DNA of 63,928 nt, the filler included, from Choristocarpus tenellus KU-1152 (taxonomy: Eukaryota > Protista > Phaeophyceae), in the NCBI GenBank assembly GCA_964200185.2. It is 10 parts of 10 records of this genome, joined end to end, with 100 filler letters (N's around TTAATTAATTAA, not from the genome) between each part and the next. Parts side by side here need not be neighbours in the genome. Positions count along the whole stretch, not along the records: positions 6,247 to 14,136 come from CAXNAD020005439.1; 9 more parts are not named here. One strand, given 5' to 3'. Position numbers and translations under genes: made by a program. Below the pieces are notes generated by a model that saw only the letters and a list, made by a program, of their open reading frames with translations, was not told the DNA's origin and made no database searches. Positions 5,341-14,136 of this stretch are shown here, piece by piece (within the stretch, counting starts at the first letter, position 1; each line of letters begins with the position of its first letter).

Positions 5341-6146
5341 GTGAGTGTTTTGCTTTTTGGGGGGGGGTTGACAGTTTTGTTTGCTGTGCTTCTGTGGGGT
5401 GTGCTGGAGTTATTTTTCTAGAGGTGAATATGGCTGTGGAGTATGCACTGATGAATAGACATGATAAACCATTGCTGGGTAAATTGGGTGCTGTGATGGA
5501 TGACCTGATGCAGTTTGCAATAAAAATTACACATTTCGGTGCGTACTGCATTTTTTCATGGTACCATACTAGGTACCATACTAGGTACCATGCTAAAATC
5601 CCTAGTAACTACCACATCTGACTACGGTCTTGTAGAGTGGGACCTCCCTGAAAGGAGGTGGACAGCACTTGCACAGGCCTTCACTCTATAGAGCACATAT
5701 ATGTGAAGGTTATTCCAGGTGCCCCTGCTCTTCAAGGATACATATTACTCCTTACAATCAAGACTACCTATACAATAGATACTGAATTTGCTTCTCCTGA
5801 TACTACGATGTATTACATTATTATTATTTTTACAAAAAGCACCACGAGAGAGGTCAAAGAACGGCTTTCCTGAGTGATACAGCTATTACAGGGAAAGGAA
5901 TGTCCTCCCATTCAGAGAAATGGGGACTGTGGACATATATCGACTGTGGGAAAGAGATACGTCTTGGGGGAGGCCCTTCACCTGCAACGGAGGCTTTTTT
6001 TCGCGTTTGCTGACATAAAGTACTGTTGCTGGAGCACCAGTTGGTTCTTACTGTGCAATCTGTTGCCTCACCTTTACTTGTTCTTTTTGTGTGCTCCTGT
6101 CCTATTTCTCTTTTTTTTCGGGGGTGGGGGGGGGCATTTTGTTCTC

Positions 6147-6246: not shown

Positions 6247-6548
6247 CCAGGCGTGAGGTTTCACGAATGCGCTTGGGGAGCATGCAGTGAGAGGGAGGGT
6301 GTATATTTCGTCGGATTCGTGTCTGTTGAGTACAAGACCGGTACCCTCAAAACATTTATCGGGGGTAATCTATAGTACTTTTTATTGTGACATGTGACGA
6401 TCACTACACATGAGAATGGAATATTTTTCAAGATTGTTTTTGTAAGGGCTGTAAAGGCTGCCTCGTACAGAAGTTGCACCAGATTTTTTTGGCTGCCACT
6501 GAATACAAAAATTATTCATCAACTCCCCTCACAAAAAAATCGACTTGC

Positions 6549-9500
6549 CCAGTGGGTACGCAGCAGCAAGGCGCTTGTGCGATGCCTGGTACCGCTGCTC
6601 GACCTTCAGGATGACGTCTTCGGGAACGCTCTTGAGCTGGTAGGGTGGTGCATCTTGGATACGAGGCGGGTGGGCGACGAAGAGGTCGTGCAGAGGGGCG
6701 TTGGGGTCGATAGCAAGGTCTCCACCTATCCCACTCCATTCGGTGCTGTGCATGTATTGCTTTACGCTAACCTTAACCCGCCCATCACCGCCTTTTTCAA
6801 CACGAAAAGCCCTGTAGCTCGTGATATTGGGGACATGGTTGACGCGACCGCAAAGGAGTCCCTTGAAGTTTCCCTCGTTCTGTAGGGTCTTGCAGTAGAC
6901 TGGAACCTCCGTGTAAGAGGCCTGCAGCTCTTCACCCAGCTGTGTTCTTGTGAATATGCTCTTCCCTTTTATACCATGTGAGAACCTGAAGGTGAAATGC
7001 AAGCAAGTTAATTTTGAGGCGGGGGTGAAAGAAACGAAGCGGAGAAGCAAGATATATATGCAGGCACATGCTCCAATGCATGTATATGGAAGTATAGATA
7101 CAAAAAGGGGTGATGCGTACATTTTTTTATTGTTTTGTTTCGAGAGTAGGTTACGAAACAGTTTTGGCAGCTGGTCTTATCGTTCGATTTTGTTGTGGGG
7201 AAATCAAAAGCCAATCAATCAATTACAGTGTATGACCATAAACCTTCCATGGATGCAACAAGCGTGAGCTGCAAGCCTCAAGGGAGTATCTGTCCGTGTC
7301 AAAACACTATATGGCTATCGGACTTGTATATCTTGCCTAGTTACCTGGAGAAGATCTGATCGACTTTGATGTGCGTGTGCCCCACCATCATAAAATGTAT
7401 CTCGACCACACGAATGACACTTACTGCGACCAACAGCCCCGCATATCCGAGAAAGAAATTGTTCTTGTTCTCTGAGACGCAGTTGTCGACCTGGCTAGTT
7501 TGGGGAGTTGGGAGCGAGGGAGGCATAGGCGTGAGGCCGATATGTCAGCCCATTTCGCCGCTTTTCGTGGAGGAACAGGGAATGTTTCGAGTACTGCTAG
7601 AGCGCAAGCTCTACATCACCGCCATCATACATGCAGGTTGCAACACACAAACCAAAACCAAAGACCGTGCAGTTAGTTACTTGGTGGCCGGTATTCAGCG
7701 AGTATATGTTGAGTAGGTCGTGTCAAGATTAAACTTTCTAACCTGCCAATGCACGTGCTGGATGATGCAACTCCCCGCGTGATCGAGGCTGTTGTGGTAC
7801 TTGTCGATAAGCCTTTGTTAGGGCAAGGTGGGTGGCTGTGCAGACAAGGTTACAATCTGCACGAACGATGATGTCCGTCGTTAGTTGGCAAATAGTACTC
7901 TCACCTATTTTGAGGGAAAATTCGGAGACAGCGCAACTGATGAGCGCTCTGCTTACTTATGCATTGTTTAATTGGAGCTAAAAAGAGGGGTAATGGAATT
8001 TGTTCTTGCAATGTAGAGCACATACACCCGAATGGCTGATATACATGTCTGTGGGTTTTCTTCCTCGTTGATTAGCTCTTACGCTCCTCTCGCCCTAACC
8101 CTAGGCTGAGGCGTAGGAGGGCAGGGGAGCACAGCGCATCATCAATTAATCGACTGTTCACTAGGCCTGCGGTATCTGTAGGCACATGGTGTAGGGATGT
8201 ACTCATCCTCAGGTATCTAACCTACGGCAGGTCCACTCGCCACAATGGTAAATCAAGTGGTGCGTGTGATTACCTGTCACTGCCGTGGGTAGGTGGGTAA
8301 AGTGCTGGGAGTGCGTGTGCTGTCTGGTTCGCGGCGTCTACGGACATGAACACGAAGCCGAGAGGTTTGCCATCGGCTTTGGCCTGCATGGCGCTGCTGG
8401 TGCCTTTGGCGATGACCAGCTGATCCGCTTGGATACTCTGGCGAATGGGGGAGAGCAACATCACGTCTGTAAATAAAATAAATCTGCTCAGAGTTGTAAA
8501 AAAATGAACACTTGTTAACACGTATCAGGTTAGTAACAAAAATGGAGTGTAGGTAACAATAAACGTTTGTCTTTGGATATGTTTTTATTTGCTACGTTCA
8601 AGACAAACACAATATTATCGGGATGGTAGGAAATACGTACCTACAGGGCCGGAAGACCGCTACATGACCTGTCCCTCCCACAGCCCATTATAGACGACCA
8701 GGAAGCAGTCTATCATACAAGGTGTTTGGGCAGGTAATAACAACATTTTTGCGGTGAGTGAAGCTACTGCTGCTGCGATAAGCACCTGCGTGAGAGTCTT
8801 CATTCGCAAAAGGCAACAGATGTTCTTCCCAATAGAGGGCAATGACGGCGACATGTTGCCACTGTACGCTTGTCGCAAAATTAACGCTGGACACCTACCT
8901 CTCGATGGTCTGACAGCTCCTTATTGATGGACTCGAGGACGGTGCAGTCGTTTGTGGGTTTTACACCAGGCGCACCGTGCCGCTTCTTTTTTAACGTGAC
9001 ACATATGTCACATTTCATAAACTCGCCTCCTACCCTCACCCTGATGTTGGGCCTGTCCTCTCTGAGCAATCGGAGGAAGTGCGCACTGCTTACCCGCTTG
9101 GAAGGGTCGTCAGGATACACCCGTATTGACTCTTTGCAAAAATCCTTGCATAGCTCCTAATTAAAAATGTTGGTTGTGTGGGCAAGTGAGGAGTTATTGA
9201 GAAGGAACACTCGAAGAACACCCCTGCAAGATATCTCGAGGGCTGGCTGACCAATAACTTGACTGAGAAAGCAGAAGACAGGATCAAGCAAGCTTACATC
9301 ATGCACTACGAAAGAGCAAATACAATGATCTTCATAAATTTGCCAGGGGCGTCATTCTGTTCGGGCCTCGCCGCCGTTTGCAGAAGCGGCAAAGGATGCG
9401 AATCTACCATCATCGTCATCATCATCGCGAAGCGCTTTAGACATACGAAGCACACACTTTTACTACCAATGTCAGACCAGGCCCGGGGCCGCAGAGTAGG

Positions 9501-10804
9501 TGTACACGGCGTTAAAATAACAATTATTGTGTCTTCCTTTGTAAAAGTGACGAAGAGTATCATCATCAACATTGTAGTCTCGACATAGCAAACGAAAAAA
9601 ATAGCCCTTGGTGCGAATCTTCACATGTTCTTTAAACCATAGCATGCAACCGGTTAAAGTAATAAACATCCACCACTCAAAATACTACTTCAATCCACTT
9701 CTTCTACGTACTGCTGGTTCTCATGGTTTGCAACTAACTCCAACACAGGGTGCGGCCAACCTCTCCACAAGCAAGGGCAAAACCTACCTCTTTGTTCGCG
9801 GCGTAGATCACAATTGTGGACTTGCGAGGCATGAGCTGCCCGTATGTATCAGCCCAGTAGTCTATCCAGGATATCACCAGGTCTCGCTTCGGAGCCATTT
9901 CCTTATCTTTGTTCGTGCCATTCTTGTTGTAGTAGCGCACGTATGTATATAAATGGATGGGAGATGTGTTGGAGGTGGATACAAGGGACGGGGGATGGAG
10001 TCCTAGAGAGATCGTATGCCAGCAGCGGATCTCTAATTCTGTAGATATTTACGCGTGGTAACTGCTGCAGCAGCGTGGGGACAGCCGGATGAGATGATAT
10101 TTGGGCAGCATAAAAAAAATATAGCACGTGTATATACACACATAGGTAACATATAGCTCCACGCTGGAGGGATCTCTAACTTGGTATATCAGACATCTAG
10201 GCGTGGTAACTGCAAAGTGAATGTGGTGAGTACGTTCGGAGTACATTGTTCTGAGATAGGACTACTGTTCAATCATTAAGCAGGGGGGGAAATATACCGG
10301 GTACAAGTAACACTGTGTACAAACCCACCTCTCCACGCCGGTGGATGCTCTTGCGTTAGGTGTGCCTTTGTAAGCGTCGATGACATGATTAGATATTCCG
10401 AACGATGCCTTGAAAAACTGCGTACTGACGGGAATGTCAGCCACGAGCATAGATCCGCCTCCAGGTCCCAACTTAATCAGAGGTACACGGTCGCCAACGA
10501 AGTGCTTGCGATCGCGGCGGTTCTCACACGCCCGGATGATGTCCTGCTCTTTGGCCAACGTGCATGCAAGGAAGGACTCGCTACCTGTGGCGAACTTCTT
10601 CACACAGGCTAAGCGCTTGCAGCAGCCACCCTGTTCGTTGACTGGGATGGGTTCAGCCCATCCTCGAGGAAGCTTGGTGCCGGTCGCTGAAGTGTCATTG
10701 GTAGAAAGCTCCAGCGCATCATTGTTGGTGGGCTGGTGAGGGGGCAACACAGGGGGAGTCGCAGGTGACAAAAGTCACCCCCTTGCTATGGAAGCAACTG
10801 TCAT
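6549..10804 (-). pseudogene. Spliced Sola-type (DUF7869-like) DDD transposase, degenerate; exons approx. 10804-10329, ~9925-9788, 9156-8898, 8466-8274, 7857-7743, 7490-7345, 6985-6549
   Basis: Motifs in the expected order: FMKCDIC; FVFMSVDAANQ..HALP (D1); QVDNCVSENKNNFFLGY..LLV (D2); HFMMVGHTHIKVDQIFSR|FSHG (D3). Junctions 9788/9156 and 7345/6985 are in frame with canonical sites. Some stops and phase mismatches occur elsewhere. Confidence 0.8.
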
Positions 10805-10878
10805 GGTGTTTTCGAGCAACAGGCGGTCTTGGGCAGTGAGAAGGTCTAGGAGTGATTAGATTCGAAGGCGGGCGTATG

Positions 10879-11227
10879 AACTTTGTTTGAGCTCCGGGCT
10901 ATCCGTAGGACCACCCTGAGATCCATGATACTGAAAATCCGTGCATTACGGTTTTCGGAAGTTGTAAATCTGATTATATCCGTACTTACAACTTTTTAAA
11001 AATACAAGTCACATACTTTATTGATATTGTACGTTTCCAATGTTCCGAAACCAACTTTGTTTGAGCTCCGGGTGATCCGTGGGACCACGCTGAGAACCAT
11101 GATACTGAAAATCCGTGCATTACGATTTCGGAAGTTGTAAATCTGATTATATCCGTACTTACAACTTTTTTTAAATACAAAGCACATACTTCATTGATCT
11201 TGTACGTTTCCAATGTTCAGAAACCAA
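10879..11227. repeat. 174-bp tandem duplication
   Basis: AACTTTGTTTGAGCTCCGGG...CATGATACTGAAAATCCGTGCATTACG...TCTGATTATATCCGTACTTACAAC starts at 10879 and 11053, near-identical. Confidence 0.9.
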
Positions 11228-11785
11228 AAGGTAAAAAAAAAACTGGCACCCTCTAATTTTTTGAAGTACAAAATCTTAAATTGTTTGACATTTGCATTCT
11301 TAAAATTACTAGAGACGACAAAACGCGGTTCTTTGGGTTTAGGGGATCCGATTTCGGATCCCCTAAACCCTTGAACATCCAAAACACGTTCATTAGGATT
11401 TTTAGAAATAGTAAATCCAGTAATAACTGTTCTTACAATTTTTGAAAATACAAAGCACGCACTTTATGGGTCTCACACGTTTCCAATTTTCAGAAACTAA
11501 AAGGTCACTTCCAACTGGTACCCACAATTTCTTTAAATACTAAAACCGCTTTTTGGCTACTTTAGTATTCTTAAAAATACTAGAGACGACAAAAAAGCGG
11601 ATCTAGAGTTTTAAAGATCCGATCGGATCGCCTAAACCCTTGAAGACCCAAAACGCGTGTGTCAGGGTTTTTACGAAACAATAATAATATTCTAATCTTT
11701 ACATCAACAAATACAAATACAAACTACATCCTTCATTGATCCAATATGCTTGAAACGTACGAAACGAAAAGGTCACAAAAAACTG
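11158..11785. repeat. ~270-bp iterated units (2 full + 1 partial); each full unit carries a palindrome
   Basis: CTTACAA.TTTT..AAATACAAAGCAC...TACTAGAGACGACAAAA...CCTAAACCCTTGAA at 11158 and 11432, with a degenerate third start near 11700. Confidence 0.8.
11335..11370. promoter_or_regulatory. Perfect 17-bp-arm inverted repeat, candidate protein-binding site or cruciform
   Basis: GGGTTTAGGGGATCCGA-TT-TCGGATCCCCTAAACCC. The next unit retains the 14-bp palindrome GATCCGATCGGATC (11616-11629). The structure is seen; the function is inferred. Confidence 0.55.
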
Positions 11786-12012
11786 TTGCTCTCTGTCTCT
11801 TTTCAATAAGAAATCGTATGCTATTCGATATTCGTATTTGTTATGCACAATTGTCAACAGAAAGACAAATCTGAGTTTTGAGGACCGACCGACCAGATGA
11901 AATAAAGCAGCACCTCCCATCCCTCAGTCCTCATTTCAATTCATTCCCTTCTGTACATAACCACGCGCACCTGTTATTTATCGATCCCCGTCACACCCTC
12001 CCAATCTTCGCC

Positions 12013-13939
12013 ATGTCCAGCATTTGCTCAACAACAACCCACCTGCCCGCTGATGGCGCTGCCCACGGATCGAGAACGTGGTACAGCAATCTGAAGGGCA
12101 TGTCCTCGCTCCTAGAACATCACTACCTCGGCACATACTGGATGAAACTCGGCAACATCACATGCACGGAGATGGTGCGTCCACTGAGCGAGCGTGGCCT
12201 TGCGCGCGTCAGCAAGTCCATCCACGAGAAAGGCTGGCTGGAGCAGTTTGCTCCGTCAGTATTAATTCAGCCAGACTGTTTAGGTAATGGGGACCAGCTC
12301 ACCACCGAAACTGTGCTTGCCTTTCAAGGACATACACTGGACGGAAACCATAGAATAACGGTGCTAAAGAGAGAGTTTGATCCCGAACGCGCTTTCATGA
12401 TGCAGGTCTACATGGAGTTCAACCAAGCAGAAGAGAGGCTAATTGCCAACGGTGGGTGATGGAGTGTTGTCGTTGTTCCATGATCGCTTGACTATTCTGA
12501 TCAACTAAGCAACAAAGTAAGTTGAGTGTTTTCGTTGTTCCATGGTCGCCTGATGACTGTTCTGATGTACAAAGTTGTTGCCGAGTTTCCTTTGTTTGGT
12601 TCATCGTCAGTCAGTCCATTGAGGATCTTTTCGTTGTTGATATTTTCTATCCCACGTGGTCTTTCTGTCCACAGCAACATGTGGCTCAGTACTGCATGCC
12701 ACGTGTGTCCCGCGACCGCTTCCCACCTACCCCTTGTCCCATTCACCCACTACATCGTGGGACCAAGCTTATAGCATTCAACGACGCGACCGAGAGTGTG
12801 GTTGAGCGCACGCTGTACGATAAGATATATTTTCAGCACGAGCTCGAAGAAGCTATCAAGCGACAGACAAAGAACAAAGAAGTGTCACTAGTAGAGATCC
12901 GCAAAATGTACAAAAAGGTGAGGGAGTTGTCAACGTTGGTGGGATGGTGGCGCTCTACTCCTCCTCTAGTTGGGTTAGAGCTGTTGTGAAATCTCTCTGT
13001 GTCATCCTATTCAACCTAAGTTGAGATAGTTATCCCGTGTTTAGGAACACTGTCAACCGACTTAATGATTTTCGGGTGACCATGTAGTATGTATGTGTGG
13101 TTAACCACAGACGAACAATAAAAGCGTCCTTCTTTGTTTTATCAACGGTGTTGCCTGAACCCCCCCCCCCCACACACACATACATACCCCGTTGGCGTGG
13201 TAATAACAATCCCTCATCCTCGCTGGCTGGGTGCATAATATTTTCCGTTTTCTCCCCATCGCGAAGGTGGGCGTTCCTCCCTCGGCGAAAACAACTCTAC
13301 GAAACTGGCAGCAAGGCGTATAATCCCTTCGACCAGAGTCCTTCGAGGTACTGAAGGAAGTGTGTGACACCTCGTCACCACAGGTCGACCGCAATACAGT
13401 CACACTGAACTATCTGAGTGCGAGGAGTTTGCTGGCTTCACTTCTCTCAACCAGGGACTATGCATCCATCCGCTTGCTAGGCAAGTCAAACCGCTACTGT
13501 GTTTTATCGTGTAGACAGCAGTAAGCACAATGTGTGAAGGTTGCAGCACATTGCACAGGAACGTTAAATAAGTGTCTCCTACGATGAAGAATGTAGTCGG
13601 CCATTGTTGTGTCGAACGAAGAACCCCTCGTAGTATTGTGGAATTCTACGAACAGTGTGTGTTTCCTGTGTATGTGCGCTCTTGTCTTTTCTGAACTACG
13701 ACAATCAATCCATGAATATTTTCTGCAGTGGCGACCCTTTCCTCATCATTACCTGCGCATTGTTCTCGTTGGCGTCCTTCCTGGCCATTCTCTTTTTGCA
13801 GGTACAAGTCGTTCAACGGAAAGGTTCCTGCGGCGAGGGACTACAAGGACATCGAATCGGACGCGCACATGTCTGAGATGGTTGTCTCGCACACCAGGCA
13901 GATTGTGCCCAAGGAGAAGTGGACACCACAGCTCCAAAG
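12013..13939 (+). pseudogene. Spliced ParB/Sulfiredoxin-domain + putative HTH protein (Spo0J/ParB-like architecture); exons 12013-12451, 12775-12917, 13267-13480, 13802-13939; 3' end missing
   Basis: VRPLSERGLARVSKSIHEKGWLEQFAPSV...TLDGNHRITVLK (R..L..SI...G and DGxHR motifs). In-frame splices give LIAN-AFNDATESVVERTLYDKI and SLVEIRKMYKK-VGVPPSAKTTLRNW (HTH-like). Premature TAA at 13321 and an apparent frameshift near 13420. Confidence 0.7.
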
Positions 13940-14107
13940 GTGGGTAAATGGTGCAGTTGCAGCGGTTATCTTTTTTTGCCTTTTCCGTATCTCCTGTGCA
14001 CCCATACGTCGCCATGCGCCCCTCAAATGTAAAATATATTGTCAGCGTCTTTTTCGGCACCGCACTTATTGATTGTTGCAAAACTGCTCTGAATTTCGGA
14101 TGTTACG

Positions 14108-14136
14108 GGCTCAAAGTATCTGGGAGGGGGTGGCGG
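14108..14136. mobile_element. MITE family A TIR at contig end
   Basis: GGCTCAAAGTATCTGGGAGGGGG running into the spacer. Confidence 0.75.

Follow-up and report, generated by a model that had tools for sequence, protein, structure and literature searches.

The contig C5439 of the brown alga Choristocarpus tenellus KU-1152 (CAXNAD020005439.1, assembly GCA_964200185.2) raises the question of whether two genes lying head to head on it, one for a DDD transposase and one for a protein with a ParB/Srx fold, belong to a single mobile element, and of what the second protein may do for that element. The contig forms positions 6247-14136 of the window, by which is meant the whole analysed stretch of 63,928 nucleotides (nt); this piece is the entire contig, one of 27,310 in an assembly of 164 Mb. 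Two spliced genes diverge there from a repeat-rich spacer of ~1.2 kb, the transposase gene on the minus strand and the ParB/Srx-fold gene, hereafter the accessory or ParB-like gene, on the plus strand. An earlier reading made from the DNA alone (the sequence-only reading) had taken the pair for a candidate new eukaryotic transposon system. The transposase and ParB-like genes are parts of one mobile element and their adjacency is not a matter of chance; C5439 is probably the middle part, 7.9 kb long, of one dead member of a family of 'giant' brown-algal cut-and-paste transposons of Sola1 type, with a composite length of ~17 kb.

Two genes of one mobile element

The exons of both genes were searched one by one, not as a joined spliced protein. 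In the source genome, exon 1 of the ParB-like gene was found at 420 candidate sites (150 of them scored, at 66-89% amino-acid identity) and transposase exon T5 (7344-7526) at 248 candidate sites (84-95% identity). All nine contigs common to both exon lists keep the divergent order, with the matched exons 3.1-6.8 kb apart. Moreover, the full contig aligns to eight other contigs with its order kept, at 82-93% nucleotide identity, and the homology is unbroken across the junctions. The ratio of nonsynonymous to synonymous substitution rates (dN/dS) among copies is 0.39 for ParB-like exon 1 (16 copies) and 0.28 for transposase exon T5 (23 copies), values that carry some bias from the picking of copies by protein score; both lie well below 1, which argues that the two genes were constrained while the family diversified.

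The pairing recurs in a sister family, represented by five loci (L050 and L065-L068) in an ENA assembly with long contigs. At L050 the minus strand carries all six transposase exon pieces and the plus strand the ParB-like gene, with 35-62% amino-acid identity to the window family. The sister elements measure 17.9 kb, three of them (L050, L065 and L066) being 98.7-99.6% identical, and they are bounded by terminal inverted repeats (TIRs) of ~720 nt with the termini AACAGGGTTGCC...GGCAACCCTGTT. One copy is flanked by a target-site duplication (TSD) of 4 base pairs (bp), AATA; no duplication flanks a second copy that has both its ends. A Sola1 transposase gene and an opposite-strand ParB-like/methyltransferase-like gene occur together in one element of more than 10 kb in both families, of 17.9 kb in the sister family and of ~17 kb, as a composite, in the window family.

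The sequence-only reading had placed the genes head to head in one element and had proposed to look for their co-occurrence elsewhere inside shared TIRs. The ParB-like gene proved to be multi-copy rather than single-copy, its linkage to the transposase gene is repeated in the distant sister family, and both genes diverge there inside shared TIRs, with a TSD in one copy. Nested insertions are common in the source genome, but a chance nested insertion of two unrelated repeats, the case which that reading had set against its own proposal, is contradicted by the identical order and orientation in 9/9 shared contigs, by the continuous homology over the junctions in eight copies and by the identical layout in the sister family, and deserves almost no credence. 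The place of the ParB-like protein as an element-encoded accessory factor is supported.

The transposase gene and its Sola1 assignment

The transposase gene was resolved into the features listed below, in which the joints are those of run X3 (described under expression) and L050 stands for the sister family.

6247-6531, no strand: internal element DNA downstream of the transposase stop; other copies are homologous from the contig's first base
6532-6990, minus: last transposase exon seen, C-terminal part of DUF7869 (profile positions 113-191, E 2.4e-5); start approximate, stop codon 6531-6529; 39% amino-acid identity to L050
7344-7526, minus: transposase exon with the catalytic core, DNCVSENKN and GHTHIKVDQIFS; DUF7869 E 1.4e-20; GTAACT donor at 7343; 62% identity to L050
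7798-7866, minus: small transposase exon, NLVCTATHL block, from tblastx of the sister family against L025; boundaries approximate
8260-8266, no strand: junction of a ~350-nt deletion found in the window copy only; six other copies have ~350 nt extra
8273-8437, minus: transposase exon, FMSVDAANQ block; joint 8437>8899; 44% identity to L050
8899-9120, minus: transposase exon, FMKCDICV block (zinc-finger-like); joint at 8899, 5' boundary approximate; 36% identity to L050
9788-9922, minus: second transposase exon; joint 9922>10328 (2 contigs); canonical GTAGGT donor at 9787
10329-10804, minus: first transposase exon, ATG 10804-10802, from an alignment of eight copies; joint 10328/10329

Two exon pieces match Pfam DUF7869, the motif DNCVSENKN...GHTHIKVDQIFS lies within exon 7344-7526, and the first exon shares its frame with ATG 10804 in the window copy and in six other copies, so that the spliced minus-strand transposase with an ATG near 10804 that had been read from the DNA holds. 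The ~350-nt deletion takes out a transposase exon (the RGY..RQKIMA..NLGGG block) that is 70% identical between the two families. In addition, codon 10 of the window copy is TGA (10777-10775), where other copies read TGG (five) or TTG (one). A GCAAGT donor had been assigned to both genes; it stands in the ParB-like gene (13481), whereas in the transposase it was ruled out, since coding conservation runs through 9825-9820 and a canonical GTAGGT donor follows it.

The transposase blocks are co-linear, as compared by eye, with the transposase of Ectocarpus Sola1-1_Ec32 printed in the supplement of PMC12477816, the common blocks being CC.RL.C, DRK.FV..VPL.KL, FM.C.IC, M..D.ANQ, GY..R.K...V.G....VF..P..LG.G and NLV.TA. 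By the same comparison, the blocks CCKRLAC and DRKHFV..RVPLIKL of the first exon match the Ectocarpus N-terminus, FMKCDICV has its counterpart in FMLCKIC, FMSVDAANQ, which probably holds the first catalytic Asp, matches MMDGANQ, and the small exon resembles the NLVCTATHL printed there. The best blastp match of the Sola1-1_Ec32 transposase is Repbase Sola1-1_PPa (PMC12477816 supplement). Judged from these blocks, the element probably belongs to the Sola1 group of the Sola superfamily.

Element termini

The element extends ~2.6 kb to the left of the contig start, and on the right the accessory gene leaves the contig at 14136 and continues for ~5 kb, its downstream exons being found on other contigs. 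An inverted motif, AACAGCCGATCACC..., stands at both element ends. The right end of the repeat is at C8793:4345, where many copies stop, and the left terminal motif lies ~470 nt outside the left region read on C10741. A terminal 24-mer, AACAGCCGATCACCAAAATTGAGG, occurs genome-wide 608 times forward and 570 times in reverse (control 0); since it faces inward at either side, on C10741 (left) and on C8793 (right), the element ends are inverted repeats. The length of ~17 kb is a sum of pieces from different copies. The termini are of the AAC...GTT type, like the AACCG..CGGTT of Ectocarpus Sola1-1_Ec32, for which a TIR of 282 bp and a 4-bp TSD are given (PMC12477816 supplement).

Sixty termini carry 60 different 8-nt flanks and therefore represent independent insertions. 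Position -4 is A in 37 of them (62%), position -1 is T in 37 (62%), and ANNT is present in 23 (38%), for which a rough estimate of the chance expectation is ~7%, the flanks being taken from single ends and not from paired ends of one copy. This A-N-N-T enrichment is close to the AWWT target that, with a 4-bp TSD, is a hallmark of Sola1 (PMC3845634, citing Bao et al. 2009). Internally deleted derivatives are present among the contigs (C3389, C6563, C26087 and C26719).

Two candidate ends were rejected. A left terminus at position 6 of L046 (AAGCTTGTAC...) arose from a query that began at the contig start, the true motif lying ~470 nt further out, and a right end ~220 nt past the start of L038 (~620 nt past the accessory stop codon) is an assembly break at poly-G. 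The left and right regions read showed no inverted similarity to each other, as neither reached the termini.

Many of the ~1,180 sites of the terminal 24-mer lie 30-70 nt from a contig end (e.g. C15:44-67, C294:33-56, C2906:42-65), and termini are far more numerous than gene-bearing copies. Much of the breakage of the assembly appears to stem from element ends, among them probably those of many short non-autonomous derivatives. Poly-G/poly-C runs of 10-30 nt inside the element also coincide with contig ends (L053, L057, L059), and one lies in the window at 13165-13176; such runs imitate element termini and help to fragment the assembly.

The accessory gene and its ParB/Srx domain

The window carries four exons of the accessory gene.

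12013-12451, plus: exon 1, ParB/Srx N-domain with VLDGNHR, from the AlphaFold2 (AF2) fold and homologues; open frame here over 148 codons
12775-12917, plus: exon 2, from FNDATES... to ...EIRKMYKK, start of a segment like a helix-turn-helix (HTH); X3 joint; GTGAGG donor at 12918
13267-13480, plus: exon 3, VGVPPSAKTTLRNW..., from the L038 copy against residues 207-277 of protein P0080 (BLASTP E 9e-7)
13802-13939, plus: exon 4, from splice-site context, GTGGGT donor at 13940; open reading frame (ORF) also in L038

That exon 1 encodes a ParB/Srx-fold N-domain is confirmed by its predicted structure. The AF2 model, built on an alignment of 48 homologues, has a predicted local distance difference test score (pLDDT) of 86 and a predicted template modelling score (pTM) of 0.75, and the top Foldseek matches are all of the ParB/Srx superfamily. 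Alignment with VIA-align gave Z 9.8 and a root-mean-square deviation (rmsd) of 2.3 Å over 88 residues against ParB bound to cytidine diphosphate (CDP), and Z 9.8 to 9.0 against ParB, PadC, Noc and pNOB8 ParB; 25 chains reached Z of at least 8, and all those listed belong to the ParB/Srx superfamily. Among the 48 homologues, the DGNHR motif shows an invariant D110 and G111, with H113 and R114 conserved at 90% or more. By sequence profile, Pfam ParB_N matched none of the 48 family members at E <=0.01, nor the window exon at E <=1, and a profile search of PDB sequences returned spurious phycocyanin matches only. There are 87 exon-1 homologues among 1.8 billion representative proteins, the nearest named ones coming from Choristocarpus tenellus (78% identity), Sphacelaria rigidula and Pylaiella littoralis, all of them brown algae; the stramenopile origin assumed in the sequence-only reading was borne out.

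Intron 1 occupies 12452-12774 (GT..AG), as given by the X3 joint 12450>12774 once its cut is moved 1 nt to the right, and two transposase introns are likewise GT..AG. Exon 2 is contiguous in the brown-algal protein P0007. Exon 3 ends at a GC donor, AG/GCAAGT (13481), at an intron position common to L050 and the Pylaiella locus L048, both with GT. It is broken in the window copy by a TAA at 13321-13323 and by a 1-nt frameshift near 13417-13419, and other copies carry insertions at 13417 and 13419. With a nonsense codon and a ~350-nt deletion in the transposase gene and a TAA and a frameshift in the ParB-like gene, the window copy of the element is dead, in agreement with the similar decay of both genes seen in the sequence-only reading. 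The ParB/Srx gene with its ATG at 12013 had been recognized in that reading too, as a ParB/Srx domain followed by an HTH; the N-domain fold is upheld, but the methyltransferase-like half of the protein had been overlooked and the gene runs past the contig.

The methyltransferase-like part of the accessory protein

The accessory exons are co-linear with an 843-residue EukProt protein, P0080, for which no encoding contig is on record, and with the Pylaiella locus. The protein is probably ~1,000 amino acids long and is laid out as a ParB/Srx N-domain, an HTH-like segment, a Cys-rich segment, a part resembling beta-class N6/N4 DNA methyltransferases and a conserved C-terminal domain. The language-model neighbours of the C-terminal region of P0080 are all PF01555 (N6/N4 methylase), and the top 40 Foldseek matches of the methyltransferase-like model are all beta-class N6-adenine/N4-cytosine enzymes (E 5.7e-7 to 1.7e-3), among them M1.HpyAVI, TTHA0409, RsrI, MboIIA, CcrM and N4CMT. 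A homologue search with the P0080 C-terminus returned P0080 itself only.

The position of motif IV, canonically (D/N/S)PP(Y/F), reads NRAP in P0080, GADK in Pylaiella L048, TRET in the sister locus L050 and AAEP in L038, and in these four lineages no [DNS]PP[YFWH] was found in any frame nearby. Similarly, the FxGxG loop of motif I reads TAESDG in P0080, VGDTDR in L048, VETTSV in L050 and VERHNM in L038. The modelled domain is apparently a beta-class methyltransferase-like fold without the canonical catalytic and S-adenosylmethionine (SAM)-binding motifs.

The intergenic spacer and its palindromes

The two genes are separated by the following features.

10805-12012, no strand: divergent intergenic spacer, AT-rich (34-42% GC), with repeated units; unit at 297 candidate sites
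10879-11227, no strand: 173-nt tandem repeat, 2 copies; Tandem Repeats Finder score 600, 92% match
11335-11370, no strand: perfect palindrome with 17-nt arms, a 2-nt gap and the core GATCCG-N-CGGATC; degenerate second copy at 11602-11643

Many of the listed spacer-unit sites lie roughly 0.5-1 kb upstream of ParB-like exon 1, and units of ~270 nt occupy 11166-11800. The 173-nt unit, present in 2 copies in the window, reaches ~22 copies in contig C4084 (L029:2770-6750); because its copy number varies so between elements, the repeat behaves as a minisatellite, and the spacer is a hot spot for minisatellite expansion. Repeat units with perfect palindromes had been described in the sequence-only reading; the repeat-rich 1.2-kb spacer stands, but only one palindrome is perfect, the second (11602-11643) being 74% complementary.

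The palindrome arm was found, within 3 mismatches, in only three of eight other copies, and at the same threshold it had no match outside the spacer in the copies searched, one terminal-region locus included. Across 14 units the core GATCCG-N-CGGATC is mostly kept and the outer arms vary between copies, as is seen in the window and in L025-L031. In five different sequences the arms pair at 17, 16, 15, 15 and 15 of 17 positions. Pairing is 13/17 within a copy and 6.2/17 between copies, a contrast inflated by arm anchoring; likewise, the significance of arm pairing (permutation p ~5e-5) is overstated, since the arms were anchored on the best palindrome of each copy and the registers differ. RNAalifold gave nothing useful on the palindrome alignment, with its register shifts, and a per-copy comparison of arms was used instead. 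Selection on a hairpin or cruciform, or hairpin-templated correction, could lie behind this co-variation of the arms.

Expression

The sequence is present in four runs of one study, and one of them, run X3, has an exon-shaped depth profile. Contigs from X3 skip 12450>12774 (GT..AG on the plus strand) as well as 8437>8899 and 9922>10328 (CT..AC on the plus strand, that is, GT..AG introns on the minus strand). They behave as RNA-derived, with predicted introns of both genes skipped on the correct strands. X3 depth is also high over 13942-14136, a predicted intron, and a loose end with a poly(A) run lies just before 14104, perhaps the mark of a further transcribed repeat or of an alternative 3' end at 14104-14136.

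Other relatives and rearranged copies

No transposase gene was found within 10 kb of the Pylaiella or L049 loci. In Pylaiella littoralis, PIF1-helicase and DUF6570 genes (Helitron-like) lie upstream of the ParB-methylase-like gene (L048:851-6225); either one element is nested in another here, or the carrier is of a different kind. In the sister family, a minus-strand ORF of 306-322 codons lies between the last recognized transposase exon and the left TIR (L050:1265-2233, L065:1131-2051), and a short conserved block is present in L025 (264-332), ~440 nt to the left of where C5439 starts; this ORF or block may add an exon to the transposase gene or a third gene to the element.

One copy, L027 (contig C3190), carries a 257-nt insertion within the accessory gene region (L027:8470-8726) that recurs elsewhere in both orientations (e.g. 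C13507, C3047, C23846) and is probably a small nested non-autonomous transposon. Another, L034 (contig C5316), has ParB-like exon 1 sequence fused directly to the far-left region of the element at ~5900-6000, and is a rearranged or nested copy.

What the accessory protein may do

In the mechanism proposed here, the DDD transposase would excise the element and reinsert it, acting at the inverted ends, and the accessory protein would bind the element's own DNA, the best candidate sites being the palindromic units in the shared promoter region. The most likely function of the accessory protein would then be to regulate the element or to act as its chromatin shield, and not to methylate DNA, a preference that follows from the absence of (D/N/S)PP(Y/F) and FxGxG in the four lineages compared. 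A role as self-DNA binder and regulator is put forward tentatively, its chances being short of even.

Several points weigh against this picture of the element and its accessory protein. The family was read in pieces from a fragmented assembly, so that its length, TIR length and TSD are composite or indirect, and the match with the Ectocarpus transposase is a visual one, made against the sequence printed in a supplement, and carries no score. The methyltransferase-like model is of low confidence (pLDDT 54.5), and the Pfam profiles for ParB and for the methyltransferase both fail to match the accessory protein. The library type of X3 is not on record, and its matches, at 90% identity or above, are evidence for the family rather than for the window copy. 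Finally, binding to palindromes is a prediction, and the spacer of the sister family has neither palindromes nor repeats; palindromes are therefore not a general requirement of this type of element.

A role as an active N6-adenine/N4-cytosine DNA methyltransferase, targeted by its ParB/HTH part to its own element and marking it epigenetically, would be in keeping with the beta-class fold of the model, with the GATC and GGATCC-like sites in the palindrome core and with the methylase role proposed for Ectocarpus Sola1-1 (PMC12477816). Neither motif IV nor motif I is conserved in P0080, L048, L050 and L038, however, and no motif IV lies nearby, which leaves an active enzyme unlikely. It is also conceivable, at a similarly low probability, that a dead methyltransferase has been turned into a DNA reader or clamp whose ParB/HTH part recognizes hairpin or cruciform palindromes in the bidirectional promoter.

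The sequence-only reading had suggested as possible a nucleotide-dependent clamp on the internal palindromes; such a sliding clamp would load there as on parS, for end synapsis or for the retention and partition of excised copies. The closest structures are indeed the N-domains of ParB, Noc and KorB bound to CDP or cytidine triphosphate (CTP), and the palindromic units lie directly upstream of the gene with their symmetry kept between copies. Yet the motif is DGNHR and not GERRxR, Pfam ParB_N does not match, and no ParA-like match was found among the 20 ORF pieces scanned, a scan that left out the outer ~2.6 kb on the left. The outer palindrome arms, moreover, differ between copies, the copies searched have no match to the arm (within 3 mismatches) outside the spacer, and the sister spacer has no palindromes. 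This proposal thus gained no specific support and is decidedly improbable.

Giant transposons often carry captured genes (PMC12477816), and many derivative copies of this element lack the ParB-like gene or the transposase gene, as would be expected of passenger cargo (Pack-type capture) that does nothing for its carrier. The linkage is nevertheless kept between families at 35-60% amino-acid identity, with the pairing present in Ectocarpus as well; the dN/dS of 0.39 resembles the 0.28 of the transposase, and the homologues are mainly brown-algal proteins and assembly contigs, both families examined being repetitive elements. A passenger gene is therefore highly improbable.

Known systems and significance

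The closest known element is Sola1-1_Ec32 of Ectocarpus, 21.5 kb long, with a gene for a ParB-like protein and DNA methyltransferase on the strand opposite to its transposase; its authors suggest that this protein acts on the transposon that encodes it, binding and modifying it (PMC12477816, Genome Biol 2025). The window family shares with it a brown-algal host, a Sola-1 transposase that matches block by block (by eye), an opposite-strand ParB-like and N6/N4 DNA-methyltransferase gene (1104 amino acids there), giant size (21.5 kb as compared with ~17 kb), AAC...GTT-type termini and, probably, long TIRs and a 4-bp TSD or target. It is, on the other hand, another family from another, probably early-branching, brown alga, its terminal sequences differ, it lacks conserved methylase motifs IV and I, and its spacer has minisatellite-like units with palindromes. 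The Ectocarpus genes are known as opposite-strand, the text of PMC12477816 leaving divergent and convergent arrangements indistinguishable.

Red algae offer a parallel. The Plavaka accessory genes described in the Bostrychia genome preprint (bioRxiv 10.1101/2025.02.11.637652) encode a ParB domain and a 2-oxoglutarate (2OG) oxygenase beside tandem inverted-repeat arrays. Of these, PAG3 of the giant Plavaka transposons, which are EnSpm/CACTA-related (Petroll et al. 2025), has in common with the accessory gene an N-terminal ParB-type domain, adjoining inverted-repeat arrays and the idea of self-binding or modification; it differs in the transposase superfamily, in the fusion of ParB to a 2OG-dependent oxygenase and in its red-algal host. 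With these and the Ectocarpus element already published, the view that the combination was undescribed does not hold, and what is newly seen here, the degenerate methylase motifs and the palindrome arms co-varying between copies, amounts to small new points.

Pairings of a ParB domain with a methylase, of phage origin, were catalogued earlier (PMC4738411). The phage ParB-terminase loci and the chlorophyte ParB-HTH-Dam fusions described there likewise join a ParB-type module to an N6-adenine/N4-cytosine amino-methyltransferase, and a phage or prokaryotic pairing of this kind is the likely source of the architecture. The enzymes of those pairings have intact catalytic motifs and act in the modification of phage DNA or in restriction-modification systems, whereas the window-family protein is encoded by an intron-containing, transposon-borne gene and is apparently without the motifs. 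With the ParABS systems (the CTP clamps ParB, Noc and KorB) it shares the N-domain fold (Z 9.8, rmsd 2.3 Å), an HTH-like segment and palindromes nearby; in contrast to them, it has no GERRxR, no ParB_N match and no ParA partner among the scanned ORFs, it is far larger, with unrelated domains, and its palindrome arms, unlike parS, are not conserved in sequence.

These elements add independent examples to a recently recognized class, the ParB-domain accessory proteins of giant algal DNA transposons. The pairing of Sola1 with a ParB-methylase-like gene extends beyond Ectocarpus to a second, probably early-branching brown alga, and also to a very young sister family (copies ~99% identical) in another assembly, and the constraint on the accessory gene is of much the same strength as that on its transposase partner. 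The absence of the methylase motifs and the co-variation of the palindrome arms are two handles by which the function of the accessory protein can be tested, and the published idea of self-methylation may not hold for this lineage. In the annotation of brown-algal gene sets, ParB-like ORFs should be classed with the genes of transposons. If a dead-methylase reader did prove to be at work, the transposon would encode a means of recognizing itself, used in autoregulation or against silencing by the host; such a system would be conserved across stramenopile Sola1 elements and convergent with the ParB-oxygenase genes of red-algal Plavaka.

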